A DNA stretch of 64,000 bases from assembly GCF_902652985.1 (NCBI RefSeq), contig NC_047027.1, positions 25,296,001 to 25,360,000 of the forward strand, written 5' to 3'. The DNA comes from Pecten maximus. Taxonomy: Eukaryota. Positions 18,600-60,890 of this stretch are shown here, piece by piece. Below the pieces are notes generated by a model. That model did no database searches, had not been told where the DNA came from, and saw only the letters and a program-made list of their open reading frames with translations. How positions within the stretch are numbered: the stretch's first letter is position 1; each line of letters begins with the position of its first letter. The translations under genes were made by a program, and so were the position numbers.

Positions 18600-21420
18600 A
18601 ACCACTACGTCACCACCGACCACAACGTCGCCACCGAGCACTACGTCGTCACCAGCCACTACGTCACCACCGACCACTACGTCACCACCGACCACTACGC
18701 GGCTACCAACCACTACACCGACTACTAACTCACCACCGATCACTACGTCACCACCGACCACTACGTCACCACCGACCACTACGTTATCACCGACCACTAC
18801 GTCACCACCGACCACTACGTCGCCATCGGCCACCTTGCAGCCACCAGCCACTACGCAGCCACCAGTCACTACGCAGCCACCAGCCACTACGTCGCCACCA
18901 GCCACTACGTAGCCATCGACCACTACGGCACCACCGACCACTACGCTGCCATCAACCACTACGCAACCACCAGACACTACGTCGCCAATAGCCACTACGA
19001 AGCCACCGACCACTACACCGCCACCAATCACTACGTCGCCACCAGCCACTACGCAGCCACCGACCACTTCACCGCCACCGACAACTACGTCGTTTCCGAC
19101 CACTACGCCGCCACCAACCACTACGCCGCCACCGACCACTGCGTCACCACCAACAACTACGCCGCCACCGACCACTACGCCGCCACCAACCACTACGCCG
19201 CCACTGACCACTACGTCACCACCGACCACTACGCCACCACCGACCACTACGTCTCCACCGACCACTACGTCACCACCGACCACTATGTCAACACCAGCCA
19301 CTACGCAGCCACCGACCACTACGTCGCCACCGACCACTACGTCGTCACCAGCCACTACGTCACCACCGACCACTACGTCACCACCAGCCACTACGCAGCC
19401 ACCGACCACTACGTTGCCACCACCCACTACGTCGCCACCGAGCACTACGTCGCTTCCGACCACTACGTCGCCACCGACCACTACATCGCCACCGACCACT
19501 ACGCGGCCACCAACCACTACACCGCCAACGACCACTAACTCGCCACCGACCACTACGTCGCCACCAGCAACTACGCAGCCACCGACCACTACGTCACCAC
19601 CGACCACTACGCGGCTACCAACCACTACACCGACTACTAACTCGCCACCGGTCACTACGTCACCACCGACCACTACGTCACCACCGACCACTACGTCACC
19701 ACCGACCACTACGTCACCACCGACCACTACGTCGCCAGCGGCCACCTTGCAGCCACCAGCCACTACGCAGCCACCAGTCACTACGCAGCCACCAGCCACT
19801 ACGTAGCCATCGACCACTACGGCACCACCGACCACTACGCAGCCATCAACCACTACGCAACCACCAGACACTACGTCGCCAACAGCCACTACGCAGCCAC
19901 CGACCACTTCACCGCCACCGACAACTACGTCGTTTCCGACAACTACGCCGCCACCAACCACTACGCCGCCACCGACCACTGCGTCACCACCAACAACTAC
20001 GCCGCCACCGACCACTACGCCGCCACCGACCACTACGCCGCCACTGACCACTACGTAACCACCGACCACTACGCCGCCAACGACCACTATGTCTCCACCG
20101 ACCACTACGTCACCACCGACCACTATGTCACCACCAGCCACTACGCCGCCACCGACCACTACGTTGCCACCACCCACTACGTCGCCACCGGCCACTACGT
20201 CGCCACCGACCACTATGCCGCCACCGACCACTACGTCGCCACCGACCACTACGTCGCTTCCGACCACTACATCGCCACCGACCACTACGCGGCCACCAAC
20301 CACTACGTCACCAGCAACCACTCAGCCGCCACCAACCACTACGCCGCCACTGACCACTACGCCGCCACCGACCACTACGTCAAGACCAACCACTATGTCA
20401 CCACCGACTACTACGCCGCCGACCACTACGCCGCCAACGACCACTACGCCGCCACCGACCACTACGTCGCCACCACCCACTACGTCGCCACCGACCACTA
20501 CGTCGCTTCCGACCACTACGTCGCCACCGACCACTACGCCATCACTGACCACTACGTCGGAACGGAGTTATACAAGAGCAACTTCTCAGCAGAGATGGCC
20601 TTCATCTAATCTATAAGGGCAATGGCAGGGTAGTGAACGACATCCTCGCCGGAGTTACAACAATCAGGACAACGTCACAAACCACTACGTCACCACCGAC
20701 CACTACACCGCCACCGACCACTACACTGCCATCGACAACTACGTCGCCACCGACCACTACGTCAACACCGATCACTACGTCGTCACCAGCCACTACGTCG
20801 CCACCGACCACTACGTCACCACCGACCACTACGTCACCACCAGCCACTACGCAGCCAACGACCACTACGTTGCCACCACCCACTACGTCGCTTCCGACCA
20901 CTTCGTCGCCACCGACCACTACACCGCCACCGACCACTACGCGGCCACCAACCAATACACCGCGAACGACCACTAACTCGCCACCGACCACTTCGTCGCC
21001 ACCAGCCACTACGCAGCCACCGACCACTACGTCACCACCGACCACTACACTGCCACCGACAACTACGTCGCCACCGACCACGACGTCAACACCGACCACT
21101 ACGTCGTCACCAGCCACTACGTCGCCACCGACCACTACGTCACAATCGACCACTACGTCACCACCAGCCACTACCCCGCCACCGGCCACCTTGCAGCCAC
21201 CAGCCACTACGCAGCCAACGACCATTACACCGCCACCAATCACTACGTCGCCACCAGCCACTACGCAGCCACTAGCAACTACGCCGCGACCAGCCACTAC
21301 GCAGCCAACGACCACTACACCGCCACCAACCACTATGCTGCCACCAGCCACTGCGTTGGCACCAACACTAGGCAGCCACCAGCCACTACTCAGCCACCAG
21401 CCACTACGCCGCCACCAACC
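18600..21420 (+). repeat. 18-bp Thr/Pro-coding minisatellite (TTSPPT)n
   Basis: Tandem array with higher-order internal duplications and several in-frame stops. Confidence 0.95.
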
Positions 21421-21469
21421 ACTGAGCCTTCCTACTTTTCTGTATTGATGTCGGTGCCACCAACAGCAA

Positions 21470-21635
21470 CACCTGTCAAAACACATACATAATCTACTCC
21501 ATATGCATTCTAACTCATATCTACCCATGTCAAAACATAAACACCATCTACCCCACATACAGTATAACTTATATCCACCCATGTCAAAACACATACCCAA
21601 TCTACCCCATATACAGTATAATTTATATCTACCCA
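21470..21635 (+). repeat. ~54-bp tandem repeat, left part (continues at 29294-29595)
   Basis: ACCCATGTCAAAACA..CTACCCCATATACAGTATAACT units interrupted by the LTR element. Confidence 0.85.
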
Positions 21636-22306
21636 TGTGATGTATCATGCTTCATAATCATAAAGGACGAATAAAGTCGATGTAGACTCCCTTTATTTGC
21701 ATCACACACCTCAAGAGAGGGTAAAAAACTACAAAGAAAACAAAACCAAAAATAACAAAAGTTAGGAAACCAACAGAAAGAGTAATCGTCTCGGACAGAC
21801 CAATAACTGTTCCTCCTAATAAATCATGTTACAAATACAATGAAATATAACACATTATATGTTCCTACCGGATAAAATTATGAGAAATTGCTCACTATCT
21901 TTCATATTCTTAATAATAAAGATTTAAACAGCTCAAATGAGGTTATTCGAATGTCATTTGTCCAAGTTATAACATGTATTCAATGTATAAACAAACCAGC
22001 AGACGACACTTGATTGAAATATGGCGGGACCTACTCGGCCAAGCCTAACACGATTTACCAAACTTACAAGATGAGAATATATGCATATGACATAATAACA
22101 AGCATCATAGATATATTATGCATTAAACCATATATTAATTATCAACACTTACTCCTTAGGGAGGCCAGTATATCCGAAAACAATAGCGTGACAGCGACGC
22201 TTCCACATGGTACTGTAGACATGGGAACTTGTAACTAATACACTAATATGCGGATAGAGGCGGACTCTAATTTCCGGACAACAGATTCCGGACTTAGACC
22301 ATCACA
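21636..22306 (-). repeat. 3' LTR
   Basis: Direct repeat of 28623-29293 (offset 6987). No differences were found by eye. Confidence 0.97.
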
Positions 22307-22316
22307 CTCCTCCTCT
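22307..22316 (-). other. Polypurine tract (PPT)
   Basis: Minus-strand AGAGGAGGAG abutting the 3' LTR. Confidence 0.85.
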
Positions 22317-22488
22317 GATTTCAAGAGAAATCATTTACAACAATTCAATCATAAGATAATTTCTTAACTACAATATTCTAAATATAATACAGTATTCATA
22401 AATGAATAATCAAATCTAAACGCTATGAAACAATTTCAGACATCAATCACAGTCTTTGGAAATGATACAACACAAGAAAATGTCCGCG

Positions 22489-25400
22489 TCACTCATCTGT
22501 TTCCAAAAGTGTTACCAGTTCGGTAACTGGTCTGACATACAATACACGTTTATTGTCTCTCACAACAGCAATCTCAACCTTTCGTACTGCACAGTCGTTA
22601 CTTGGAAATGTTCTTTCAACTATTCCAACCGGCCATTCATTTCGAGAGCGCTCCCCGTCTTTTAAGAGAACCAGGTCTCCCGGTTGAAGGTTCTTGGTGT
22701 GTTTTTGCCACTTCTTTCGCAATTGTAAACCGTGAAGATACTCATTCCTCCATCTCCTCCAGAATTCCTCTGCAAGTGATTGCACGTGTTTCCATGTCGA
22801 GCGCAACACATCCTTTGTGTTGTAAGGAGGGAACGGGTTGACATCACAACTAGTCTTACTTGTCAACAGCATAGACGGCGTAAGAAGAACAGGTGACTCT
22901 GGATCACTGAATACATCCACTAACGGTCTATTGTTCACAATTGCACAAACTTCAGACATAAGAGTGGTCAATACCTCGTGTGTGAGACTTTTCCTTTGCT
23001 GTTGAAGCAACATAGAGTTCAAGATGTTCTTGGCGACACCAATTAACCTTTCCCAAGCGCCACCCATGTGAGGCGAGTAGGGTGGGTTGAAAATCCACTT
23101 GATTTTGCCGTCGGATAAGAAGTCAGCAACATGATCATTCTCAACAAATCTTGCATCAATGGCCAGATCTTCTGTCGCTCCCACAAAATTCGTGCCCCTG
23201 TCGGAACGAAATTGGATGACCGGTCCACGCACAGAAATAAACCGTCGTAAGGCGTTAATAAAAGACGAGCTGGAAAGTTGTTCTATCACCTCTATATGTA
23301 TGGCTCTTGTCACAAGACATGTGAACAACAAAGCCCATCGTTTCTGCGTTGCAGATCCTCCTCTGGTCCGCCGGAATGAGATAGGCCAAGGTCCAAACGT
23401 ATCCACACCGACATATGAAAAAGGTGGTGAAGGAGTGCATCTGTCAGTAGGAAGATCTGCCATATACTGTTGACCAAACTGACCACGAAGTTTCTTGCAG
23501 GTAACACAATTGTGAATAATAAAGTTAACCATTTTCCTGCAACTCACGACCCAATATCCACCTGTGCGAACAGCTCCTTCTGTAAACTTACGACCCTGGT
23601 GAACTACTTTTTGATGAAAATGACGAACCACCAGAAACGTCACGTGATGGCTCTTGGGAAGTATAACAGGGTTCCTTAATCCTGAGCCGATAATCTCATT
23701 GTCGATCTTGTTAAGGCGACCTCCTACATGTAAAAGTCCATCTGTACCAATAACTGGAGTAAGAGTTTTGAGAGAACTTGAATGAGGAATTTCTTTTCCA
23801 GCATGGATACGTTGGAACTCTGAACTGAATGCATCTTGTTGAGCTACTGCAATGATGGCACGCTCACTTTCTTGCAGAAATTCTGGTTCATCAAATCGAT
23901 CAGGTAAGCGTTCTCTGTCCTTCCGGATATGAGCTGCCAAGAACTTTATACGGGCAACAACTCTCACAAGTCTTTTCCAGTTTGAAAATCTGGTGAATCT
24001 CTTAGAGAATCCCTCTGGCACCTTTCCACAATCTGTCTGTTTTACTTTCTTCTCGGGAACATCTATCATATCCTCCGACTGCTCCATTTTTGAACAGTTT
24101 ACTTCAGGACGGATTTCCAAGTCATGATCCGGGTCTATTAAATCATAGCCATCCGGGGATGTTCTATGCTTGATATCGGGGCCAAGAATCCAACTAGAGT
24201 CTGGCAATAACAAAGCGTCTAGACCTCTAGTAGCTACATCTGCAGGGTTACACTCCGACGGAACAAAATTCCACTGAGTCGGTTTGCTGAACAGACGAAT
24301 CTTGCTCACTCTGTTTCCCACATATACGTAGAATCTACGACTTTCGTTTGATATATATCCAAGTACGACTTGACTATCAGAAAAGAACTGAAAGCTATCC
24401 TGAGGAATATCGAGTTGGACCCGAATGGTCTCAGCAATTTCTGTAGCGAGTACCGCAGCGCACAACTCTAATCGCGGAACTGTATGTCCATGCGTAGGTG
24501 CTAATTTAGCCTTTCCTAACAGAAAGCCAATGCTAAATCTACTAGGATCGTAAAGTTTGAGGTATGCGACAGCCGCTATCGCATCTTTCGACGCATCAGC
24601 AAACACAAGAACTTCCCTTCTCAAAGCGTCATCAAAAGAGATGTCGCAGTAGACGCGTGGTATGCTAAGATTCTCAAGGTTGTGCATAGAATTAACCCAC
24701 AAACACCACTGGCCATAGAGTGACTCAGGTAGAGGATCATCCCAGTCATTGCTTGAGGTGACGGACATCATTTCCCGAAGCAGTAGTTTTCCCCGAATAG
24801 TGAACGGCTGAGCAAATCCGAGAGGATCATATATACTATTGATTGTTGATAACAGGCCACGACGCGTGTAAACTTTCTCCACTTGGTTAACCTTGAAAGT
24901 GAACGAATCAGTTTCTGTATCCCACAAAAGTCCTAAGCTCCTTTGCGTGGGGAGAGTTTCTGTCAGGAGATCAATATCTTTGAGATCCTTAGCCAGGTCT
25001 TTCTGACAAAAAGCATTAAGCACATCCCTGCTATTTGAAGCAAACTTATGAAGTCTGATTTCTCCATTCTCTTGGAGAGCGTGTTTTGTGCGTTCCACAA
25101 TGTCAATAGCCTCAGACTGGGTCCTACATGACAACAGACCATCGTCAACATAGAAGTCTTTACCCACTAAGTTCTGCACGTCCTGATCAGAATTTTCTAC
25201 AGCCTTACGCAAGCCGAAATTAGCAACAGCAGGAGAGGCAGTGTTGCCGAAAACATGTCTTGTCATCTGATACTCAACTAACGGCTCACTCAAATCATTG
25301 TTCTTGTGCCACAAAAAACGTAGGAAGCGACGTTGCACCTCAGGAACCTGAAAGTTGTAGAACATTTGCTCTACGTCCATGGTGACTGCAATTCTTTCAC

Positions 25401-28400
25401 GACGAAATCTAAGTAAGATACCAAGCAGGCTGTTCAACATATCGGGTCCTTGTAACAGAACGTCGTTGAGCGATAAATTCTGGCACTTGGCAGATGAGTC
25501 AAACACCACACGTATACTATCAGGCTTCTTAGGATGTTGAACTGCAAACAGTGGCAAATACCATTTCTCTGTAGAATCTGGTAAAGCTGGTGCTAACTCT
25601 GCGTGCTTATTACCGAAAAGTTTCTCCATGAATTCCATAACTCTTTTCTGTTTGTCTGGGTTCGACTTGAGACTCCGATCAAACGAATTCGCTCTTTTAA
25701 GAGCCATACTCTTGTTGTCAGGCAGAAAGGGTCTATTCTTCTTAAAAGGCATGGGTGCCTCCCAATGTCCACTAGGGGTTTGTTTGAATCCAGTTTCCAT
25801 AGTGCTAAGGAACCTTTTGTCCTCTATCGACAAGCCAGGTTTCTCATCTCCCGGTACTCGTTCGAAGATAGGGTCCTCCTTCACCATGAGTTCACTCTCG
25901 CATGGCTGCAAGTATGTAGGTCTGCCGTTAGCGAACACTGATGTTTTGCTCACACTGACCTGTTCCGGTAGGTGTGCGCGACCTAAACACACATCACCAA
26001 TTACAACCCATCCAAGAGGTAACTTCTGGCCGAATGGTAGCCAGTCTCCATCGATACGTTGATCTACAACATGATGTGCAGATACCAAGTCCCTACCAAT
26101 CAAAATTTCAATTTCCACACTGTCGTTCACGGGTGGAATAAGTGACGCGATGTCTCGTAAATGACTGTAATTCTCTGCCACTTCTGGAGATGGAATTTCA
26201 CTACGATTGTTTGGGATCTCATTACACTCAATCAAACAGGGTGATTGCAGAGTACATGAACCATCAAGAGATTGTATTACATATCCAGATGCTCTCCGAC
26301 CAGAGGTAGTAAACTTGCCAGCACATGAAGTGAGTACATATTCTGCACTTGGACCAAATTCTCTAAAGGCGTCGAAGAATGCTGACGTAGCCAATGACTT
26401 ATTACTCTGGTCATCAATCATACAGTAAACATTGCGGGCTCGAGATGGCTGCCCATTGGGAAATACACTGACAAGCAGTATTTTAGCACACGACTTACTA
26501 GTACTGTGACGAGTACTACAAACCTCAGTACAGTGAGTTTCAACTCGGAGCTTCTCCTCCTCGTGGTCTTCACTAGGTATTTGATGTCGCTGACTTCTGT
26601 AATTATCTTGTGATTTCTCCCCCTCATACTGTTTCCCAGAGTCTGCGTCTGGATGAAGTATTCCGATGTGATCTGGGGAACCACAAACATTACACTTGAC
26701 AGTTTCTTTACATGTTTTCCTTGTATGGCGCTTCTGCCCGCAACACTTCAAACAGTAACCATTTTTATATACAAAGTCTTTACGATCTTTCAGAGTTCTG
26801 TTTCGGAATTTAAAACAGTCTTTCAGTAGATGATTAGAATTTTCACCATGAATAGGACATTTCCCACCTTTAGGGTTGGTTTCCGGAGTAACCTCGGTCT
26901 TCCGTGATGATATCGAAGTTTGACGATGAGAATCCTGTGACAAGGGTTTATATTTCTGTTGTGTACTAGGAACTTTGTTCGGCTTCACAAACGAAACATC
27001 AAAATCAAAACTGGGGTCGTTACGTAGACGGGCCAGATCACGCAAGTATCTTGTGAGTACTGAGAATGGTACTTGCGACGTTCGATTTGTCTCTTTGTAG
27101 CGATAACACTGATTGGCCCATTTTTCCCTCAAGCGTTTAGGTAATTTTCTAACAAAATCATTTATCCCACTAGAAGTGTCATAATAGCTAAAAACTGGTC
27201 CCAACACTGTGTCGGTTTTAATGGATTCAACCTCCGCTGCCAAATCTGATAGGTCAAAAAAGCGCTTAGTGTCATTTTCCTTAAGATCCGGAAACTGGTA
27301 TATTCGTTGTTTCAATGCTCTTTCGATAATTTCTGCACTACCAAACTCGCTATCAAGCCGCTTCCAAATTTCGTCCACAGCCTTCTGAGAATTCCTGGGA
27401 TTAGAAGCGCGTATGTTCTCTGCTTGTGTTTTAGACTCAGCACCAAGATGATTTACGAGCAGATCTAGATGTTCCAAGATAGACGCCCCAATTTCTTCCA
27501 TTACATTAAGAAAGCCGTATTTCCAGGTTAGGTACCTAGCTGGTTCATCTGTAAATTGAGAAAGTCTCTGAGGCAAAAGTTGATTTTTTGCCACTAATTT
27601 TGCTAAGTCAAATGCCTCATTTCTATTTTCAGGCTTAAACGCAACAGCACTAGGGTTAAGAACACGTGTAGTATCAGCCGCTCCAGTAGAGGGAATCTGT
27701 ACAACAGTTTCTATTGGTTCATCCTGAGTAACATCTTCTGTAGGAATAATAGGTGGAGATACATTATTGTCTTTATTCTCCTCTACATAGCGCAAAATGT
27801 GACGATTGGTCTCTGACCCAATATAACTGCCTCGCTTACTTGCAGAATCTTTATTGCTAGCATTTGAAGATCTAAAGTCAAAAGCTTTGTGAATTGCATT
27901 AAGTCCAGTCTCAGCTACTTCTAATTCTCTCTTCAGATTTAATAAATTCCTACTTGCCTGTAAAGCTGCCTCTTGTTTTATCAATTCAGCCTCCTCTTGT
28001 GCATATTTCATGCGAGATCTTGCCTTTTCAACTTTGGCTGTATGTTTTACCAACATTTCAGTCAACCGACTCGACCCTGAAACACCTGACCGTCTGGTTG
28101 ACAGCATCTTGTGTGAAATTGACGGCAACAAGGACTGTAAGTGCTCTATAAATGACGTCACTTTATCATGTAAAGCTGCAGATGTGAGACGATGAGCTGC
28201 CTCTTCACTGGCACTATGATCTGTGCGAGTCCCTTGTAAGAATTGTTCAAACTTTTTAGCTTTCGCTTCATAGCGAGCTAACAGTTTTTGTATGTCATCA
28301 ATAATTTGCTGGCCCTGGGCAAGATCTATATTTTCTGAGGAATCGATGATAAAGTCAATGTCCCTTTTGATTTTCAATAATTTGGTTGTATAATGCGACA

Positions 28401-28461
28401 CCTTTTCTTCATAAAGATTCACACCGGACTCTGTCATCTTCCTATTTTGGCGGACATCCAT
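22489..28461 (-). CDS. BEL/Pao Gag-Pol polyprotein (Gag zinc knuckles, protease, RT, RNase H, integrase)
   Basis: Three Cys/His knuckles (CPIH, CLKC, CNVC), protease MIDDQS, RT FYVDD, RNase H FADAS and PRLELCAA, integrase HHCC plus DTFGP/SDRGTNF/GGAWERL. The frame is uninterrupted; first ATGs at 28461 and 28437. Confidence 0.97.
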   Translation of the reverse strand: MDVRQNRKMTESGVNLYEEKVSHYTTKLLKIKRDIDFIIDSSENIDLAQGQQIIDDIQKLLARYEAKAKKFEQFLQGTRTDHSASEEAAHRLTSAALHDKVTSFIEHLQSLLPSISHKMLSTRRSGVSGSSRLTEMLVKHTAKVEKARSRMKYAQEEAELIKQEAALQASRNLLNLKRELEVAETGLNAIHKAFDFRSSNASNKDSASKRGSYIGSETNRHILRYVEENKDNNVSPPIIPTEDVTQDEPIETVVQIPSTGAADTTRVLNPSAVAFKPENRNEAFDLAKLVAKNQLLPQRLSQFTDEPARYLTWKYGFLNVMEEIGASILEHLDLLVNHLGAESKTQAENIRASNPRNSQKAVDEIWKRLDSEFGSAEIIERALKQRIYQFPDLKENDTKRFFDLSDLAAEVESIKTDTVLGPVFSYYDTSSGINDFVRKLPKRLREKWANQCYRYKETNRTSQVPFSVLTRYLRDLARLRNDPSFDFDVSFVKPNKVPSTQQKYKPLSQDSHRQTSISSRKTEVTPETNPKGGKCPIHGENSNHLLKDCFKFRNRTLKDRKDFVYKNGYCLKCCGQKRHTRKTCKETVKCNVCGSPDHIGILHPDADSGKQYEGEKSQDNYRSQRHQIPSEDHEEEKLRVETHCTEVCSTRHSTSKSCAKILLVSVFPNGQPSRARNVYCMIDDQSNKSLATSAFFDAFREFGPSAEYVLTSCAGKFTTSGRRASGYVIQSLDGSCTLQSPCLIECNEIPNNRSEIPSPEVAENYSHLRDIASLIPPVNDSVEIEILIGRDLVSAHHVVDQRIDGDWLPFGQKLPLGWVVIGDVCLGRAHLPEQVSVSKTSVFANGRPTYLQPCESELMVKEDPIFERVPGDEKPGLSIEDKRFLSTMETGFKQTPSGHWEAPMPFKKNRPFLPDNKSMALKRANSFDRSLKSNPDKQKRVMEFMEKLFGNKHAELAPALPDSTEKWYLPLFAVQHPKKPDSIRVVFDSSAKCQNLSLNDVLLQGPDMLNSLLGILLRFRRERIAVTMDVEQMFYNFQVPEVQRRFLRFLWHKNNDLSEPLVEYQMTRHVFGNTASPAVANFGLRKAVENSDQDVQNLVGKDFYVDDGLLSCRTQSEAIDIVERTKHALQENGEIRLHKFASNSRDVLNAFCQKDLAKDLKDIDLLTETLPTQRSLGLLWDTETDSFTFKVNQVEKVYTRRGLLSTINSIYDPLGFAQPFTIRGKLLLREMMSVTSSNDWDDPLPESLYGQWCLWVNSMHNLENLSIPRVYCDISFDDALRREVLVFADASKDAIAAVAYLKLYDPSRFSIGFLLGKAKLAPTHGHTVPRLELCAAVLATEIAETIRVQLDIPQDSFQFFSDSQVVLGYISNESRRFYVYVGNRVSKIRLFSKPTQWNFVPSECNPADVATRGLDALLLPDSSWILGPDIKHRTSPDGYDLIDPDHDLEIRPEVNCSKMEQSEDMIDVPEKKVKQTDCGKVPEGFSKRFTRFSNWKRLVRVVARIKFLAAHIRKDRERLPDRFDEPEFLQESERAIIAVAQQDAFSSEFQRIHAGKEIPHSSSLKTLTPVIGTDGLLHVGGRLNKIDNEIIGSGLRNPVILPKSHHVTFLVVRHFHQKVVHQGRKFTEGAVRTGGYWVVSCRKMVNFIIHNCVTCKKLRGQFGQQYMADLPTDRCTPSPPFSYVGVDTFGPWPISFRRTRGGSATQKRWALLFTCLVTRAIHIEVIEQLSSSSFINALRRFISVRGPVIQFRSDRGTNFVGATEDLAIDARFVENDHVADFLSDGKIKWIFNPPYSPHMGGAWERLIGVAKNILNSMLLQQQRKSLTHEVLTTLMSEVCAIVNNRPLVDVFSDPESPVLLTPSMLLTSKTSCDVNPFPPYNTKDVLRSTWKHVQSLAEEFWRRWRNEYLHGLQLRKKWQKHTKNLQPGDLVLLKDGERSRNEWPVGIVERTFPSNDCAVRKVEIAVVRDNKRVLYVRPVTELVTLLETDE

Positions 28462-28609
28462 CAGTAAACAAATTAAAGTTGAAAACAATTCAATTCTATT
28501 GGTGATACGAAGGATACATTACTACTGCTGTGTACTGCAGGCCAGGTCATCTTACTGCAGGCAAGGTCAAACTACAGCAGGCAAGGTCAAACTACTTCAG
28601 GCCAGGTCA

Positions 28610-28622
28610 AAGGATTTTTTAC
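28610..28622 (-). other. Non-tRNA primer-binding site GTAAAAAATCCTT
   Basis: Lies immediately after the 5' LTR and lacks the TGG that pairs with tRNA CCA. It is complementary to the predicted spliced LTR junction. Confidence 0.7.
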
Positions 28623-29293
28623 TGTGATGTATCATGCTTCATAATCATAAAGGACGAATAAAGTCGATGTAGACTCCCTTTATTTGCATCACACACCTCA
28701 AGAGAGGGTAAAAAACTACAAAGAAAACAAAACCAAAAATAACAAAAGTTAGGAAACCAACAGAAAGAGTAATCGTCTCGGACAGACCAATAACTGTTCC
28801 TCCTAATAAATCATGTTACAAATACAATGAAATATAACACATTATATGTTCCTACCGGATAAAATTATGAGAAATTGCTCACTATCTTTCATATTCTTAA
28901 TAATAAAGATTTAAACAGCTCAAATGAGGTTATTCGAATGTCATTTGTCCAAGTTATAACATGTATTCAATGTATAAACAAACCAGCAGACGACACTTGA
29001 TTGAAATATGGCGGGACCTACTCGGCCAAGCCTAACACGATTTACCAAACTTACAAGATGAGAATATATGCATATGACATAATAACAAGCATCATAGATA
29101 TATTATGCATTAAACCATATATTAATTATCAACACTTACTCCTTAGGGAGGCCAGTATATCCGAAAACAATAGCGTGACAGCGACGCTTCCACATGGTAC
29201 TGTAGACATGGGAACTTGTAACTAATACACTAATATGCGGATAGAGGCGGACTCTAATTTCCGGACAACAGATTCCGGACTTAGACCATCACA
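28623..29293 (-). repeat. 5' LTR containing a predicted 424-nt GT-AG intron (29139..28716)
   Basis: Donor AAGGA|GTAAGT, acceptor TTTTGTTTTCTTTGTAG|, and AATAAA at 28684-28679. Confidence 0.95.
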
Positions 29294-29595
29294 ACCCATG
29301 TCAAAACATATACACAATCTACCCCATCTACAGTAAAACTCATATTCACTCATATCAAAACATATACACAATCTACCCCATCTACAGTAAAACTCATATT
29401 CACTCATGTCAAAACACATACACGTTCTACCCCAAATACATTATAACTCATATCCACCCACAAACACATTCTACCCCATATACATTATAACTCATATCCA
29501 CCCACACACACAATCTACCCCATATACAGTATAGCTCATATCCACCCACACACACAATCTACCCCATATACAGTATAACTCATATCTACCCGAGA
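29294..29595 (+). repeat. ~54/43-bp tandem repeat, right part
   Basis: Continuation of 21470-21635. Confidence 0.85.
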
Positions 29596-54200: not shown

Positions 54201-57200
54201 AATATTTTCTTTAAACGAGCATGAAAACAAATGAAACTTTATTTGTGGTCAAAATCGATTATTTTTTTATAAAACTGAAATTGTGAAAGACTATGTTTCT
54301 GTCACTGTCAGTAATAACTGCTTCTATATTGTGCTGTATATTCATTTATTAACATCTTACAGTTAAACAAAAGTAAAAAATATGACTGCGACCTATATCA
54401 TGTATACAGTTAAATATATTTTTTACTGAAATTATGTGTTTGTATGCAAAAACATGTGCATGTAGCAGTGTACGGTAAAAATGCCAAATTCTGATAAATA
54501 TGGCACATGTTTTAGATATGTAAACATTGCCAGTTAACTCTACATATAACCTCTAATAAAGTATATATATTTGAAAACTGTACAACATTTGCAACATCAG
54601 TTTACTTATCCTTCAGAGCTCTATTAAAGTTTTCTGTGAGTTTTAGAGCTGTGAATACCATGGTAACAGCTTAAAAAATTCCCAAAAACTGCAAAATATT
54701 ATGATATTTGACCAAAATGGCGCAATTCTCTACACAATTTTTTTTTCTGAAACCTATTTAAAATCAAACATCGCTATCCCAAAGACAGAATTAATCTTGT
54801 TTGGACATATGCTGTAAATTAAGTTTTTCCGCTATTTTACCTTTCCTGTGGGCTTCCATTTTTCGCTGTAGGCATATCATAATACAGGAGTTATTTGCTT
54901 AACAATAAAATTGCCCATGGCCAGGCTGTCTTAATGTGATGTGCTACCTAATGACACAAACCGTACACAGCCTGTTTTTTCCGCGGATATTATTTAGTAA
55001 CTGATCTTTGTACTCACAAGTTACGCTGATGCGCAGCACATAAGTTTGCCTTTTCTTTTTACTCGTATTATGATTTTTTTTTTAATTTTTTTTTTTTAAT
55101 TTTTAGATTTTTCGAACATTTGTATCCTTCGATGAAGGTACATTTATATGTGAACTTCGCATCATACACGCAGGTTACTATATATCAATTAACATGTATG
55201 AATCGCCATTTGTATTGTATCACATTGCATATCATTGCTTTATTAATGATCCCCTACCACGATAGACTATACAACTACATACTTGCATAACAGACAACAT
55301 ATTGTATATGAACATTTAATGTATACCTGCCATGTTGAGTGTATAGTCATCACTGTCCACTTGTTTGTTACCATTAGGTAGGTAAAAGTTGGTACGTCTA
55401 CAGTACCACACAGATCCATGGTCTCCCGTCTGCTGTGGCTGTATGATCCACCGGAACGCTGTACCAAGCCTTACTCCAGACGTTACACAGGAACAGACAT
55501 CCGGTGTACAGGGGACGGCGGGGCTGACTTTAACGTTGTAACATTGGTCACCACCTATTTGTATACCACCTACTGGAGTAGTGACGTCACGACGGCGGTA
55601 AAACTGGACACTATTGGCCTCCTCTGGTACATCACACGTCAGTGTAAACTCAGTCCCAGGGACGGCGTACTCAGACGACCCGGTCAGGGTTACAGTATCT
55701 GAATATGAAATTGGATGACACGTTTAATGTGAATGTACCGCTTTTTCATTTAACGAAATGGTTAAGCATTGAGCTGTTACCAAATGGTAATATACAGTCG
55801 ACATGAATACAAGTCTGGTGACAGATTTATAGAATGTCGCAGGGTAACATAAATCATCAATCTGTCACCCAAATTATATCGACCGTATAATAACAACAGT
55901 TCAGTGCGTATGTATACATTCAAAAAGATTATTTTTTATTATTTATTTACTGTAGCATTAGACGTATTTAAATCTACCGCTTACCCTGTCACTGACGTCA
56001 TCAAGTTCAAATAGCGGAGCAAACGAAATTTTCAAAAGAAATGATATAGTCCCCCGTGTCGTTATCAGTAGCAATGACATACAATGGTTTTGGCATAGAT
56101 TTAGCTTTAAAACCGTTTTTCTGCGCAATGATATACGGTTATCATTTTGTAGTGATGCGGCATTGAATGGGTATAACTGGATAGACCCGATTCCTCAAAA
56201 ACACATATGTTTTTATCGTCTTGATATACGTTATTTCGGTAGAAAATCAGCTCTTACATTCTAAATGAAAGTCATCATGATAGAAGGTGAAAATGATTCC
56301 AAGGATATTTCGTTCGAAACATATTCCCATCTAATATAACCGGCCATATCAGTGTCGCTAATTAAGCCGACGATGATTTAATTTAACATTGGCTCGATTT
56401 CAGAGTAAGATAGGCCTTTGACATCAGTGCTAACAAAAACAAAAAGAGAATAGTAGGCCTATACATAAACAAACGGAAACCATGTTCATAATCCCGATTT
56501 TTTCACTATTTTATATAAATCCTGGACTGGTCTTTGGGCAGTGGCTCTCGCCTAATTGTTGTAGGGTGGTAGCTCTCGTCCTACGGCTCTAGGATTGTGA
56601 CTCTCGTCTTAAGGTTCTAGGGTGGTGGCAATCGCCTTATTGTCCTAGGGAGTGGCTCTCGCCTTATGGTACTATGGCGTTGCTTTTGCCTTACGATTCT
56701 AGGGTGTTGGCTCTCGCCTTACGGTTACAGGGCGGTAGTTCTCGCCCAACGACTCTAGGGCGGTGGCTCTCGTTTCACGGTGATGTGGCGGTGGCTCTGG
56801 CCATACGGTTCTAGGGCGTTGGCTCTCGTCCTACGGTTCTAGGGTGGTGGCTCCCGCCTTACGATTAGAGGGTGGTGGTTCTCGCCTTACGGTTCTAGGA
56901 CGGTGGTTTCTCGCCTTACGGTTCTAGGGTGGTGGCTCTCGCTTTACGATTATAGGGCGGTGGCTCTTGCCGTACGGTCCTAAGGCGGTGGCTCTCGTCC
57001 TACGGTTCTAGGGTGGTAGCTCTCGCTTAACGGAAATATGGCGGTGGCTCTCACTTTACGATTATTGGGCGGTGGCTCTCGTCCTACGGTCCTAGGGCGG
57101 TAGCTCTCTTCTAATGGTCCAAGGGTGGTGGCTCCCACCTTACGGTTCTAGGGCGGTGCCCCTCACCTTACGATTATATGGCGGTGGCTCTCGTCTTACG

Positions 57201-60200
57201 GTTCAAGGGTGGTGGCTTCGGTCTTGCGGCTTTAGGGTGTTGGCTCTCGTTTTATTGTCATGTGGCGGTGGCGCTGGCCTTACGGTTCTATGGCGGTGGC
57301 TCTCGTCCTACAGTTTTAGGTTGGTGGTTCTCGCTTTACGATTATAGGGCGGTGGCTCTCCCGTTACGGTCTTGTGGCGGTGGCACCCACCTAACGGTTC
57401 CTGGGCGGTGGCTCTTACCTAACGATTATAGGGCGGTGGCTCTCGTCTTACGGTCATATGGTGGTGGCTATCACCTTACGGTTCTTGGGTGGTGGCTGTC
57501 CTCTTACGATCTTTGGGCGGTGGCTCTCGCTTTAATGTTCTAGGGCGGTGGCTCTCGTCCTACGGCTCAAGGGTGGTGACCCTCATCTTACGGTCCTAGG
57601 GCGATGGCTCTCGACTTTCGGTTCTAGGGAGTAGCTATCGCCTTATGGTCCTATGGCGTGGCTTTTCCCTTACGATTCTAGGTTCTCGCCTTACGGTCCT
57701 GTGGCGGTGGGTCTCGTCTTACGGTCTATATAAACAGTCGGTGTAGTATGGTTGGCTCGCCAGCATACTTTGTACGCAGTGATTGGTTACCTGCTATTTC
57801 TAATGTCACCAAGTATAGAGGTAAAATGCAAAACAAATATATATATATTGCAATGCGAATGTAATTGATGAAATCAGAGAGATCCGAATATTTAAACATG
57901 ATTGTTAAACATTGCTCTGCTATTTCTTGCCCAGTTGCTGTTTTATTTGGTTATGGTTGGAATTCGATAAAATCAGAGAGACATGCGTATGAACAACAGG
58001 TTCATAATTGTCCGCTCGTAGACGCACTTAATACATAACTATATATTTCATAAACAATTTATCTCCATAGTTACTCGAGTTTCAGCATACCCATCTTTTT
58101 CAAATTTTCCTATTATTCTTTACTAATAAATTAACTGTTTGTCGCTCTTTGTTATAAATGGCTTATGGTGTGATATCCGTTATACAATTATAAACTTTGG
58201 AGTGCTAAAGTCATGAAACATTTATTATCATACTATTAGCCTAATCTGTTTTATAAAATATTTAATTTTAGTACAATTCATATGGACAGTAAAACATAAA
58301 ACACATTTCTGAAATGGCGAATATGTGTAAACATTCGTGTCAAAACGAGAAACATAACTTTGTCTTACCTAAATAAAACTTCATCTAATGTTGAGGCTTC
58401 AGTGTTTGATTGAGAAGTCTTAGATACAGTTAATACATTGATTCCATGAATTTACAACTATACTGTTGGTGGCGGTCAGTTAATCAATATGTTTGTTTGC
58501 TTGCTTGCTGAGTTTATCGTTCCATGAACAGTCAGTGTCATTTTGAGGCGGACTCTCCTTGTAGTAGTTGATGACTACCTCATTAAAAAAAAACACGGAC
58601 GTCCAGTCGTATGCCATACAGGATCCGTTAGGGATAAAGTGCCTTCCCAAGGGACCCGACTACGACAGCACAAACCGGTCCGTTTCTCAGCTTATCGATA
58701 GCGTAATGGTAACATTACTAATATCCTATGTATGGTGGCATTCTTAACGTCAGTCGTTACATACGCGACCAGCGATGTTTGCCTGAATTCAAACTAATAT
58801 TCCGGTTTACTTCGAAATGTTTCATATACATATTGATTTTAATATATCACGATTAACATTTAAAGTTAAGGTCAGGAAAATGCTATATTTTGATAATTTC
58901 TGGGTTCATCAAATCAGTGAAATATATTTACATCAACAATCCAACAAAATAGATGTACATGTTTTGTTATCTTATACCATAATAGAGGTTTAAATATCTC
59001 TCTCCAAATTATGTATTTTGTTTTTAGCTCTTGTATTCATGCTAACATATGGGCTGTAAGGCTTTTGGAATAGTATTCGAATAGCCCACTAAGTGACTCG
59101 CACACACTCTATGCTACGAGTTCGGTTATCAAGCCATTTTTTTATATTGGCCCTAATACGCTGCCGTATGTGTGTTATCTGAGAAATGGGATGATAGTGT
59201 TTGCTGTTCTGTAATCGTAGTCAGAAAGCGACACCTTTGAACTCATTTACGGGCCCACAATATGTAATGGCGATAACATATTGAGATTTGTGAGGGTTTC
59301 ACGTGACGTAAAATGTTATTATCCTCAGCAACACAAAACATATCATAACCTGACATAAATGAGTTGTTTAATTTATACAAAAATATATAGCACCCATTTA
59401 TATGAATTTAGTAATATATACAACTACACCATGCAGCGGTTTCATTCTGTTAGGGTTTGTAACTATTACAAGGTGTTATCTTTGAAAAAAAACAGAAAGA
59501 GAAGAACGGACGAATGACGGGCAAACGGCCGATCGGACGGTCGGACAGACAGACAGACAGACAAAGAGACACACAGGTAGCTTTGGTACTGTATATATAT
59601 ATTATAGGCGCTAGGTAAACAGCCAATTGAAACAATTACATTGCATTATCTTTTGCATATTGAAACAACAAATGAACAATATTATGATACATTTGAGGTT
59701 CACGTCAACATCTGTATATCTAAACTGTATTAAGGGTATCAGTCTAATGACGTCACTCGGCACGATTTAAATAGACTCACTAAATTTATAAAATAAAAAC
59801 TACATTTTTTGATATAATGACAGGGTTGATACGAGTAAGTGTACATTCTATACGTACCTGACGGTGATGAGAGTAAGTGTACATTCTATACGTACCTGAC
59901 GGTGATGAGAGTAAGTGTACATTCTATACGTACCTGACGATGATGAGAGTAAGTGTACATTCTATGCGTACCTGACGATGATGAGAGTAAGTGTACATTC
60001 TATGCGTACCTGACGGTGATGAGAGTAAGTGTACATTCTATGCGTACCTGACGATGATGAGAGTAAGTGTACATTCTATACGTACCTGACGATGATGAGA
60101 GTAAGTGTACATTCTATACGTACCTGACGATGATGAGAGTAAGTGTACATTCTATACTTACCTGACGGTGATGAGAGTAAGTGTACATTCTATACGTACC

Positions 60201-60890
60201 TGACGGTGATGAGAGTAAGTGTACATTCTATACGTACCTGACGGTGATGAGAGTAAGTGTACATTCTATACGTACCTGACGGTGATGAGAGTAAGTGTAC
60301 ATTCTATACTTACCTGACGGTGATGAGAGTAAGTGTACATTCTATACGTACCTGACGGTGATGAGAGTAAGTGTACATTCTATACGTACCTGACGGTGAT
60401 GAGAGTAAGGGTACATTGTATACTTACCTGACGGTGATGAGAGTAAGTGTACATTCTATACGTACCTGACGATGATGAGAGTAAGTGTACATTCTATACG
60501 TACCTGACGGTGATGAGAGTAAGGGTACATTCTATACGTACCTGACGGTGATGAGAGTAAGTGTACATTCTATACGTACCTGACGGTGATGAGAGTAAGG
60601 GTACATTCTATGCGTACCTGACGGTGATGAGAGTAAGTGTACATTCTATGCGTACCTGACGGTGATGAGAGTAAGTGTACATTCTATACTTACCTGACGG
60701 TAATGAGAGTAAGTGTACATTCTATACGTACCTGACGGTGATGAGAGTAAGGGTACATTATATACGTACCTGACGATGATGAGACTGCCAATAGTAGTAA
60801 GATGAACCAGTAGATTCTTATGTCACTTTTGGATACAGATACGTGTTGATTCTGTAGGTACATTTTGGACGTATATCTGTTTACGTTCAT
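33204..60890 (-). CDS. Multi-exon Ig-superfamily type I membrane receptor with ITAM/ITIM-rich tail (gene 1)
   Basis: Phase-compatible GT-AG exons: 60890-60770 (signal peptide), 55698-55327 (IgV-like, LTC..DHGSVWYC), 53721-53395 (Cys-less Ig), FN3? ~52872-52671 at the gap edge, 46968-46864 (TM), 43697-43682, 43368-43328, 7x cassette 42791-34770, 33943-33910, 33500-33442 (ITAM), 33316-33204 (putative last exon). AATAAA at 33026-33021. Confidence 0.8.
33442..33500 (-). CDS. Gene 1 canonical ITAM exon (QMYESLGTRSNAAVYDELE)
   Basis: TTCTAG|...|GTGCGT, phase 2-1, encoding YxxL-x8-YxxL. Confidence 0.8.
34355..34487 (+). mobile_element. Truncated V-type SINE
   Basis: CCAGGTACTGACCGTAGGCCGGTGGTTTTTCTC..TTTCCTCCACC matches 53911-54120. 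Confidence 0.75.
34700..43250 (-). repeat. Seven tandem ~1.15-1.35-kb units, each with a 25-nt and a 77-nt exon
   Basis: 77-nt exons at 42354-42278, 41012-40937 (76 nt), 39851-39775, 38508-38432, 37350-37274, 36004-35928 and 34846-34770. 25-nt exons at 42791-42767, 41646-41622, 40287-40263, 39142-39118, 37784-37760, 36641-36617 and 35284-35260. Confidence 0.9.
44050..46645 (+). repeat. 27-bp G-rich minisatellite (GAGGATGTAAGAACCACGTCTGTGGGG)n, intronic
   Basis: About 95 tandem units. It explains the EDVRTTSVG ORFs. Confidence 0.95.
46864..46968 (-). CDS. Gene 1 transmembrane exon
   Basis: TTTACAG|..VASIAFFITSSVLLVTAVSLVLCII|GTAAGT, followed by a basic CRRTLR micro-exon (43697-43682). Confidence 0.8.
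47805..47933 (+). mobile_element. 129-bp TGTA..TACA element with tRNA-like A/B boxes
   Basis: A box GGTAGCTCAGTGGTAGAG, B box GGTTCGAAGCCC, and flanks AGAG/GGAG. Confidence 0.55.
48965..49130 (-). mobile_element. CORE-type SINE remnant (related pieces at ~48740-48835 and ~58500-58690)
   Basis: TCTCCTTGTAGTAGTTG.TGACTACCT and CTTGCCCAA.GACACAAC (reverse of the CORE GTGTCCTTGGGCAAG). Confidence 0.55.
49171..49366 (-). mobile_element. tRNA-derived V-type SINE
   Basis: GGGGCCGCAGTGGCCGAGTGGTTAAGG head; paralog of 53911-54120. Confidence 0.85.
52873..53372. other. Assembly gap (500 N)
   Basis: Run of N. Confidence 1.
53395..53721 (-). CDS. Gene 1 second Ig-like exon (no canonical Cys pair)
   Basis: 327 nt open, phase 1-1: FTSNPSPSFVW...FGLYNVTATNTHG. 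Confidence 0.85.
53911..54120 (-). mobile_element. Full-length tRNA-derived V-type SINE
   Basis: A box TGGCCGAGTGG, B box GTTCGAAAC, V-domain-like GGTTTTTCTCCGGGTACTCCG.CTTTCCTCCAC, and tail GGACGTTAAACAAAAA. Confidence 0.9.
55327..55698 (-). CDS. Gene 1 IgV-like exon
   Basis: 372 nt open, phase 1-1: DTVTLTGSSEYAVPGTEFTLTCDV...GDHGSVWYCRRTN. Confidence 0.85.
56535..57725 (+). repeat. Diverged 28-bp minisatellite (AGGGCGGTGGCTCTCGYCYTACGGTTCT)n
   Basis: About 42 degenerate units. Confidence 0.92.
59833..60784 (-). repeat. 38-bp tandem repeat derived from the exon-1 donor site (~25 copies)
   Basis: Unit CTTACTCTCATCACCGTCAG|GTACGTATAGAATGTACA. Confidence 0.95.
60770..60890 (-). CDS. Gene 1 signal-peptide exon
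   Basis: M...IYWFILLLLAVSSSS then G|GTACGT, phase 1. Confidence 0.7.

Follow-up and report, generated by a model that had tools for sequence, protein, structure and literature searches.

A BEL/Pao retrotransposon of Pecten maximus whose primer-binding site is complementary to a predicted splice junction within its own LTR: comparative evidence for probable splicing-dependent self-priming

The window (the whole 64,000-nucleotide stretch of the Pecten maximus genome that was analyzed) contains a complete BEL/Pao (Belpaoviridae) LTR retrotransposon of 7658 bp, located on the minus strand at positions 21636-29293. Self-BLAST of the window delimited its two LTRs as direct repeats of 671 bp each that are 100% identical: the 5' LTR at 28623-29293 (minus strand, TGTGATG...CATCACA) and the 3' LTR at 21636-22306 (minus strand). 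Reading of the flanks yielded a 5-bp target-site duplication, TGGGT, at 29294-29298 upstream and 21631-21635 downstream (minus strand). We consider this element to be young. About ten copies, with 98.5-100% identity, are present in the Pecten maximus genome, for which we searched an assembly of 918 Mb in 3,983 contigs. The copy in the window sits inside a 54-bp satellite; as a separate observation, an 18-nt satellite dominates repeat finding over 15-35 kb of the window.

Gag and Pol are encoded by a single ORF of 1999 aa plus stop (22489-28488, minus strand). Its Pfam hits are Peptidase_A17 (the Pao peptidase, 8.9e-40), DUF5641 (1.5e-24) and a weak RVT_1, its closest protein is an uncharacterised Pecten maximus protein (100%), and its homologues are annotated as BEL/Pao-type. 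A polypurine tract, AATCAGAGGAGGAG (22307-22320, minus strand), abuts the 3' LTR, and its counterpart in relatives reads AAATCAGAGGGGGAG followed directly by TGT. Membership of the Belpaoviridae is established by Pol, in which Peptidase_A17, RVT_1 and DUF5641 are all present, and the LTR features of the family are found as well (TGT...ACA ends, the TGGGT duplication and the tract AATCAGAGGAGGAG). The element does not belong to the Tf1/sushi chromovirus lineage (Ty3/gypsy), as both Pfam and the homologues indicate BEL/Pao. What is missing is the 18-nt primer-binding site (PBS) for tRNA-Arg or tRNA-Gly: the post-LTR sequence GTAAAAAATCCTT has no TGG and no matching host locus. Since a tRNA PBS is a descriptive and not a phylogenetic feature, the assignment by Pol stands.

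The PBS GTAAAAAATCCTT occupies positions 28610-28622 (minus strand), beginning at the first base after the LTR, and four tandem units of ~20 nt resembling TTTGACCTGGCCTGNAGTAG lie directly 3' of it (28540-28609, minus strand). Within the LTR we predict a spliceosomal intron of 424 nt (28716-29139, minus strand) that reads GTAAGT...pyrimidine tract...TGTAG. Exon 1 ends with CCTAAGGA (29140-29147, minus strand), so that AAGGA closes the exon at 29140 and GTAAGT opens the intron at 29139; on the other side, the pyrimidine-rich TTTTCTTTGTAG closes the intron at 28716 and exon 2 opens with TTTTTTAC at 28715. These first 8 nt of exon 2 (28708-28715, minus strand) would form the 3' end of the primer; they pair with PBS positions 1-8, and the last 5 nt of exon 1 pair with PBS positions 9-13 (8 nt of exon 1 pair in another genomic copy, L007, described below). 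An AATAAA poly(A) signal (28679-28684, minus strand) is located between the acceptor and the end of the LTR. The 3' LTR has the corresponding exon 1 end at 22153, intron at 21729-22152 and exon 2 start at 21728 (minus strand).

Joined together, AAGGA and TTTTTTAC form a perfect 13-nt reverse complement of the post-LTR sequence, with the 3' C pairing with the first base after the 5' LTR and A-U pairs making up 8 of the 13; the unspliced LTR offers only a contiguous 8-mer complement. When all combinations of the 57 GT and 31 AG dinucleotides of the Pecten LTR were scanned, the predicted pair was the unique best, with 13 nt against 10 for the next. A preliminary description of the locus, made from sequence alone, had given the donor at 29139, the acceptor at 28716, a 13-nt match upon splicing and an 8-nt match without it, all of which held on re-reading. 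The promoter that drives exon 1 must lie in the first ~150 nt of the LTR; the start of transcription is inferred, and no TATA box or start motif upstream of the donor was consistent across families.

Relatives of the element were reached via Pol-region protein homologues, followed by retrieval of contigs with flanks. This yielded ten families at 49-65% Pol identity, from Saccostrea echinata (two families), S. cucullata, Mytilus edulis, Crassostrea virginica and Logan assemblies (five families). Family L076 was left out of the LTR comparison because its LTR was not within the contig. A nine-family set was used, comprising Pecten, the two S. echinata families, S. cucullata, Mytilus edulis, Crassostrea virginica and three Logan contigs. 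These close families share a GTAAGT or GTAAGC donor, a pyrimidine tract followed by TAG or CAG, then after 20-35 nt an AATAAA-type signal, ACA as the last three bases of the LTR and a PBS that begins with GTA or GTG. A blind scan of all GT..AG pairs in each of the nine LTRs returned the consensus donor and acceptor as the unique best combination, with a match of 11-16 nt against 9-10 nt for others. The intron was present in every Logan contig of relatives examined, one of which was circularly collapsed.

The paired sequences differ between families on both sides of the junction. Written as exon 1 end plus exon 2 start, then PBS, they are AAGGA + TTTTTTAC and GTAAAAAATCCTT in Pecten (window copy); TAAGGA + TTTTTCAC and GTGAAAAATCCTTA in S. 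echinata L074; ATGGT + TTTTTTAC and GTAAAAAAACCAT in S. echinata L077; ACAGGA + TTTTTTAC and GTAAAAAATCCTGT in S. cucullata L078; TGGA + TTTTTTAC and GTAAAAAATCCA in L080; AAGC + TTTTTCAC and GTGAAAAAGCTT in Mytilus L081; AAGA + TATTTTAC and GTAAAATATCTT in C. virginica L082; and TAAACT + TTTCTCAC and GTGAGAAAAGTTTA in L163. Exon 2 shows compensatory changes at primer positions 3 and 7 and exon 1 at positions 9, 11, 12, 13 and 14, and in a cross-matrix each PBS was best matched by the junction of its own family. The two S. echinata families, L074 and L077, share one host, and their PBSs differ, each following its own LTR. Diverged Pecten LTR relatives (L019-L030) were considered as a further test of PBS covariation and rejected, being solo, fragmentary or composite, with none followed by gag-pol. 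Two of these relatives retain AAGGA followed by GTRAG.

The sample was widened to 80 BEL/Pao loci at 29-56% identity from a metagenome collection, which were subjected to an automated scan that let the PBS be anchored anywhere upstream of gag, placed the acceptor 25-260 nt upstream and required at least 6 nt of exon 2 and at least 3 nt of exon 1. The strict version returned 8 loci against 0 in reversed-sequence controls, and the relaxed version, allowing G-U or one mismatch, 22 loci against 5/80 in reversed controls. Four relaxed-scan loci (L098, L120, L133 and L143) were judged spurious and excluded from the family count. About ten more families (35-45% Pol identity) were found to carry the signature with entirely different paired sequences. 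In L096, for instance, GAATTATAAC precedes the donor GTAAGT and TTCTCAC follows the acceptor TTTAG, which together match the PBS GTGAGAAGTTATAATTC over 17 bp; the helices measure 14 bp in L088, 13 bp in L084, L092, L128 and the L099 group, and 12 bp in L094 and the L104 group. The close sisters L092 and L094 differ by compensatory changes between exon 1 and PBS (GACT/AGTC versus GGTT/AACC).

The same layout is shown in 19 independent families at 35-65% Pol identity, drawn from metagenome contigs as well as from scallop, mussel and three oysters. Throughout this set the donor, acceptor, poly(A) signal and geometry have been preserved, and the helices span 10-17 bp. Donors are GTAAGT, GTAAGC, GTGAGT or GTATGT and acceptors YAG, and the introns range from 90 to 549 nt with unrelated sequences. 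The helix starts exactly at the first post-LTR base in all 19 families, and the poly(A) signal falls between acceptor and LTR end in 18/18 tabulated families. A quick maximum-likelihood tree built on Pol residues 1000-1480 placed all signature-bearing elements in one clade (SH-aLRT 100), which also takes in other Pecten families without 5' end sequence in the comparison. A distant relative in the outgroup branch, L131, has a normal tRNA-type PBS in which ACA is followed by TGGTGGCAGCGG (ACA, then TGG).

Minimum free energy (MFE) folds of the spliced leader, computed with a local ViennaRNA installation, contained the complete junction/PBS helix in 9/9 families. RNAalifold on the contiguous segment from exon 2 to the PBS returned only a small hairpin, and the 8-bp exon-2 helix was scored explicitly instead: in a reference-based alignment of 8 families, 64/64 cells were paired, with two compensatory pairs. 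When the partner was shifted by one column, the paired fraction of the whole scored structure fell from 96% to 58%. The small hairpin of the RNAalifold consensus, CCTC-TCTT-GAGG (28696-28707, minus strand), lies directly 3' of the predicted primer end; as CCUC...GAGG it is stacked on that end and appears in the MFE folds of the nine closest families. Pair counting across the aligned families found no compensatory change in this hairpin. Upstream exon 1 could also form an outer helix with sequence lying 3' of the PBS, where the tandem units hold GGCC, able to pair with a GGCC of upstream exon 1. This outer helix is strong in about half of the families and its support is moderate (own versus cross-family duplex energy, permutation p ~0.016), and we therefore do not count it among the main evidence.

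Two natural variants bear on whether a spliced RNA intermediate exists. The first is family L107, whose 237-bp LTRs have no intron: in both of them ...CCTACCACGGA runs straight into TTTTTTACCAC..., complementary to the PBS GTAAAAAATCC. L107 is sister to L085 within the intron-bearing clade (SH-aLRT 92), and its exon-like flanks resemble those of L085 and L083. From this nested position it follows that the loss of the intron is derived and that it was precise at the predicted junction, which is the outcome expected if an RNA with a spliced 3' LTR had been reverse-transcribed. The second is the Pecten copy L007, which differs from the window copy over 754 nt by five substitutions and one 4-nt deletion at the donor. 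Two of the five substitutions, T to A at PBS position +14 and A to G at +16, each create a base that pairs with exon 1, bringing the junction/PBS match to 16 nt versus 13 nt in the window copy, with a chance probability estimated at ~4e-6. The resulting 16-mer is the reverse complement of the junction and has no second occurrence in the 918-Mb Pecten genome, so that its template was not DNA. In retroviruses the PBS of the progeny can be copied from the primer. By analogy, spliced LTR RNA copied as a primer would yield exactly the PBS of L007. Intron loss in L107 and PBS conversion in L007 are in our view indirect support for a spliced RNA intermediate.

Among the assembled contigs of four sequencing runs aligned to positions 23294-29293, no splice joint was found. 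In two RNA-seq runs (X9 and X10) contigs were colinear with the genome across the LTR donor, and in X9 across the acceptor too; these contigs extend 350-620 nt into DNA beyond the element, and coverage of the element interior was zero. They are therefore not transcripts of the element itself, and we take them to be read-through RNA or contaminating DNA from some LTR copy. Two other runs (X1 and X5), the kind of which we could only guess, cover the whole element thinly and evenly. The absence of joints neither supports nor refutes splicing, as the element interior is unexpressed in the true RNA runs; assembled contigs also drop minor isoforms.

A host locus for a primer was sought by searching the 918-Mb genome for the 18 nt after the LTR with at most one mismatch, and only the ten element copies exceeded the control. 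The other matches numbered 3, against 15 in a reversed-pattern control, and none adjoins an LTR end. No host locus encoding the joined exon-exon sequence was found in the Pecten genome either.

The best explanation of these observations is, to our mind, Tf1-like self-priming by a primer that only comes into being through splicing of the LTR, a reading that we hold to be likely (probability of about 0.8) and in which splicing and cleavage are inferred. Its basis is that the complement of the PBS exists only once the LTR intron is removed, so that splicing would make the self-primer. Complementarity, conservation with two-sided covariation in 19 families, the splice signals, the L107 loss and the L007 conversion are shown. 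The element would use no tRNA primer; splicing of the leader would instead join the last 3-10 nt of exon 1 to the first 6-9 nt of exon 2, and the joined exon ends would pair with the PBS, which follows the 5' LTR without a gap. On its 3' side (...UAC) the complement would then end exactly where minus-strand DNA is required to start. The spliced RNA on the PBS would be cut after the C, presumably by the RNase H of the element by analogy with Tf1, and the new 3'-OH would prime minus-strand strong-stop DNA. With somewhat wider scope, it is likely that splicing-dependent self-priming is spread across a large clade of marine-invertebrate BEL/Pao elements.

Whether the primer originates in cis or in trans, and what becomes of the intron in the 3' LTR, are matters of inference. 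In a cis version, the 5' leader would be spliced, fold back onto the PBS and be cut after ...UAC, with the intron of the 3' LTR retained. Strong-stop DNA would cover only LTR positions 587-671 and transfer to the R segment that lies beyond the acceptor of the 3' LTR, and the rest of the new LTR, intron included, would be copied from the 3' LTR; because the intron would be inherited from there, it could be removed from the 5' copy without loss. In a trans version, a separately spliced LTR transcript would prime on fully unspliced genomic RNA. As both LTRs carry the intron, replication needs either differential splicing or a trans-acting primer RNA, and neither has been shown.

The idea of a self-primer made by splicing was already put forward in the preliminary description, and the comparative and genetic evidence strongly supports it, while the spliced RNA itself has not been directly observed. 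The checks proposed there came out as follows: junction-PBS covariation is present on both sides in 19 families; no host RNA matching the PBS equally well was found in the Pecten genome; and spliced reads are represented by no joint in assembled contigs, from RNA runs in which the element interior is unexpressed. The caveat raised there, that both LTRs keep the intron, stands in a narrower form, since the requirement to remain unspliced applies only to the 3' copy or to a separate template RNA.

A bolder reading, which we consider less likely than not, is that the LTR acts as a miniature gene whose product is an RNA dedicated to priming. A short transcript would begin in the LTR, be spliced and end at the poly(A) site of the LTR itself, and this short RNA would anneal in trans to the PBS of unspliced genomic RNA and be cut to prime. 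If so, splicing would sort the RNA of the element into a primer class and a template class, and a whole clade of BEL/Pao elements in marine invertebrates would depend on the host spliceosome for its retrotransposition.

Several alternatives to splicing-dependent self-priming can be weighed against it. The one that retains most of the evidence accepts that the intron is spliced and that the junction pairs after the LTR, and assigns the helix another purpose (hiding the 5' poly(A) signal, marking spliced versus unspliced RNA for packaging or translation, or dimerisation), with priming left to another primer. In its favour, the junction/PBS helix encloses the AAUAAA signal and U5, and no primer has been directly observed. 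We nevertheless find it unlikely: the helix starts at the exact first post-LTR base in 19/19 families, which is the site required for the 3' end of a primer, no TGG-type PBS or other conserved candidate lies nearby, and the conversion of the L007 PBS towards exon 1 is what primer copying would yield. A more radical alternative does without splicing altogether, the two LTR segments pairing discontinuously with the PBS while an insert of 240-550 nt is looped out as a folded domain, and the primer being released from exon 2 by a Tf1-like cut. In unspliced RNA the 8 nt of exon 2 are indeed contiguous, and the contigs showed only unspliced LTR RNA or DNA. This account leaves unexplained, however, why the insert always runs from GTAAG, GTGAG or GTATG to a pyrimidine tract and YAG while neither its sequence nor its length is constrained, why the loss in L107 removed precisely this insert, and why the PBS of L007 has exon-1 bases contiguous with exon-2 bases; we regard it as very unlikely.

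Still less credible is priming by a small RNA or a tRNA fragment of the host (...AAGGAUUUUUUAC), which would make the match to the LTR secondary. Host tRNA priming is the stated rule for Belpaoviridae (PMC8742986), and a short host match of 12-13 nt cannot be excluded by genome pattern counts. Against this, no locus in 918 Mb exceeds the control count and the junction 16-mer is found only as the PBS of L007; the PBSs differ between families of one host, each following its own LTR, and do not start with TGG; and the variants seen make it impossible for one conserved host RNA to match them all. Finally, the match could be due to chance, chosen post hoc in an A/T-rich LTR, which would be a fair objection to a single element with 8 A/U pairs and GT and AG sites picked afterwards. 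Its recurrence in 19 families with different sequences, with no hit in the reversed controls of the strict scan, all but rules this out.

A primer assembled by the spliceosome, if confirmed, would be a new way to start reverse transcription and a direct mechanistic link from host RNA processing to retrotransposition. To our knowledge, the primers described for LTR retroelements are either host tRNAs, intact or cleaved, or contiguous 5' pieces of the element's own RNA, the latter in the Tf1 group. Surveys of BEL/Pao elements in metazoans, molluscs and annelids (PMC3118150, PMC6238403, PMC8556966) make no mention of PBS, introns or self-priming, and the open-access full texts that we searched contain no earlier description of LTR introns, junction-PBS pairing or Pao self-priming; subscription journals were mostly outside this search, and an earlier report is possible. 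The finding contradicts the tRNA-primed description of Belpaoviridae for a large clade with abundant and recently active members in bivalve genomes, accounts for the failure of tRNA-based PBS finders on this clade and offers a simple signature for annotation. It also raises the testable question of how the intron is kept in both LTRs while its removal is used, and the L107 intron loss and L007 PBS conversion provide a natural system for studying the inheritance of a primer sequence.

The elements described here resemble canonical Belpaoviridae in having a Gag-Pol with a peptidase of the Pao family, a reverse transcriptase and an integrase with a DUF5641 tail, as well as TGT...ACA LTRs, a 5-bp target-site duplication and a purine tract before the 3' LTR. 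The ICTV profile describes the family as host tRNA-primed, with an 18-nt PBS for host tRNA-Arg or tRNA-Gly (PMC8742986); the clade with LTR introns differs in lacking a TGG PBS, which its distant relative L131 has. Spliced introns or LTR donors occur in other retroelements, including Ogre of legumes, the gag RNAs of copia and BARE elements, the R region of HTLV-1 and foamy viruses. There, as in our proposal, RNA of the retroelement is processed by the spliceosome of the host and some of it has to remain unspliced to serve as the genome, but splicing yields subgenomic mRNAs or joins ORFs, and none of these elements is known to have donor and acceptor both inside the LTR or to give the junction a role in priming. 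Internal or half-tRNA priming, as in copia and Ty5-like elements, uses a fragment of a host tRNA. It shares with the BEL/Pao clade a PBS that does not start with TGG and a primer 3' end made by cutting a longer RNA, whereas in the BEL/Pao clade there is no host match and the PBS covaries with the element's own LTR.

The closest parallel is provided by Tf1 and Tf2 of S. pombe and Tj1 of S. japonicus, which are self-primed by a contiguous 5' segment of their own mRNA (PMC4600332, where the Tf1 mechanism is summarised with references to Levin 1995/1996 and Lin and Levin 1997/1998). In both groups the PBS complements the mRNA of the element itself and not a tRNA, the complement ends at the LTR/PBS boundary and a cut in an RNA duplex is needed to free the primer; the small hairpin beside the duplex also recalls the U5-IR stem-loop of Tf1. 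A self-complement of the Tf1 type abutting the LTR end is found in the scallop element only in the predicted spliced form (13 nt), and it is contiguous in the intron-less L107. The Tf1 group belongs to the Ty3/gypsy chromoviruses and the scallop-type elements to BEL/Pao, and whereas the Tf1 primer is the contiguous first 11 nt of the transcript, the scallop-type complement is split by an intron of 90-549 nt. A BEL/Pao primer of this kind would carry exon 1 upstream of its paired part, and would therefore probably be longer than 11 nt.

In the Pecten copy L007 (G000:C1992) and its 3' LTR, L016, we observed a 4-nt deletion present in both LTRs, which converts the donor, at the start of the predicted LTR intron, from GTAAGT to GTGTTG, while a single site distinguishes the two LTRs from one another. 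L007 is also the copy in which the PBS match reaches 16 nt, so that three of its six mutational events hit the system formed by the donor, the junction and the PBS.

Downstream of the PBS, the leader of the Pecten element comprises four tandem units of roughly 20 nt each (window 28540-28609, minus strand), which abut the PBS and begin with the PBS-region tail (TTTGACC...). A two-fold repeat was also found at positions 166-240 of L075, one of the copies and relatives of the element, where part of the PBS itself is duplicated (AAATCCTT...). The leader repeats of the Pecten element and L075 could conceivably act as repeated docking sites for exon 1; alternatively, they might reflect slippage as plus-strand transfer starts. 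Two copies of the family (L009/L010/L027/L028, on G000:C2029 and C1852) carry a leader insertion of ~1 kb, located 33 nt downstream of the LTR, shortly beyond the PBS, and starting with an ATA-rich simple repeat.

At the other end of the LTR, TCCGGAA/TTCCGG motifs (ETS/STAT-like palindromes) recur within the first 40 nt across the families, as exemplified by the LTR start of the window element (window 29250-29293, minus strand), and are candidates for the promoter required upstream of exon 1.

The window element is inserted in a satellite with a 54/44-bp period that continues on either side (window 21474-21638 and 29297-29591). Arrays of an 18-nt unit (ACCACTACGTCGCCACCG) occupy window 18601-21423 (157 copies) and 5423-6467 (58 copies), and a 345-aa ORF (20611-21648, minus strand) traverses one of the two; given this ORF and a period divisible by three, the array may be a repetitive coding exon. 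Together with further large tandem arrays at window 7614-12731 (period 32 nt), 44097-46642 (27 nt), 56536-57730 (28/56 nt) and 59833-60784 (38 nt), the minisatellite content of the window is unusually high.

At least three contigs (L023-L025; G000:C3792, C1016 and C173) share a composite repeat that contains inverted repeats and has no gag-pol within 1.5 kb; embedded in it are 165 nt from a related LTR, with TGTAG|TTTTC... and the end ...ACA|GTGAAAAAG among them. Finally, the Pol of L085, a relative on metagenome contig NSIT01000151.1, is nearly identical to that of two Pecten maximus loci (L070/L072), from which we infer that the Pecten genome harbors a second BEL/Pao family with a junction-type PBS, only distantly related to that of the window element.
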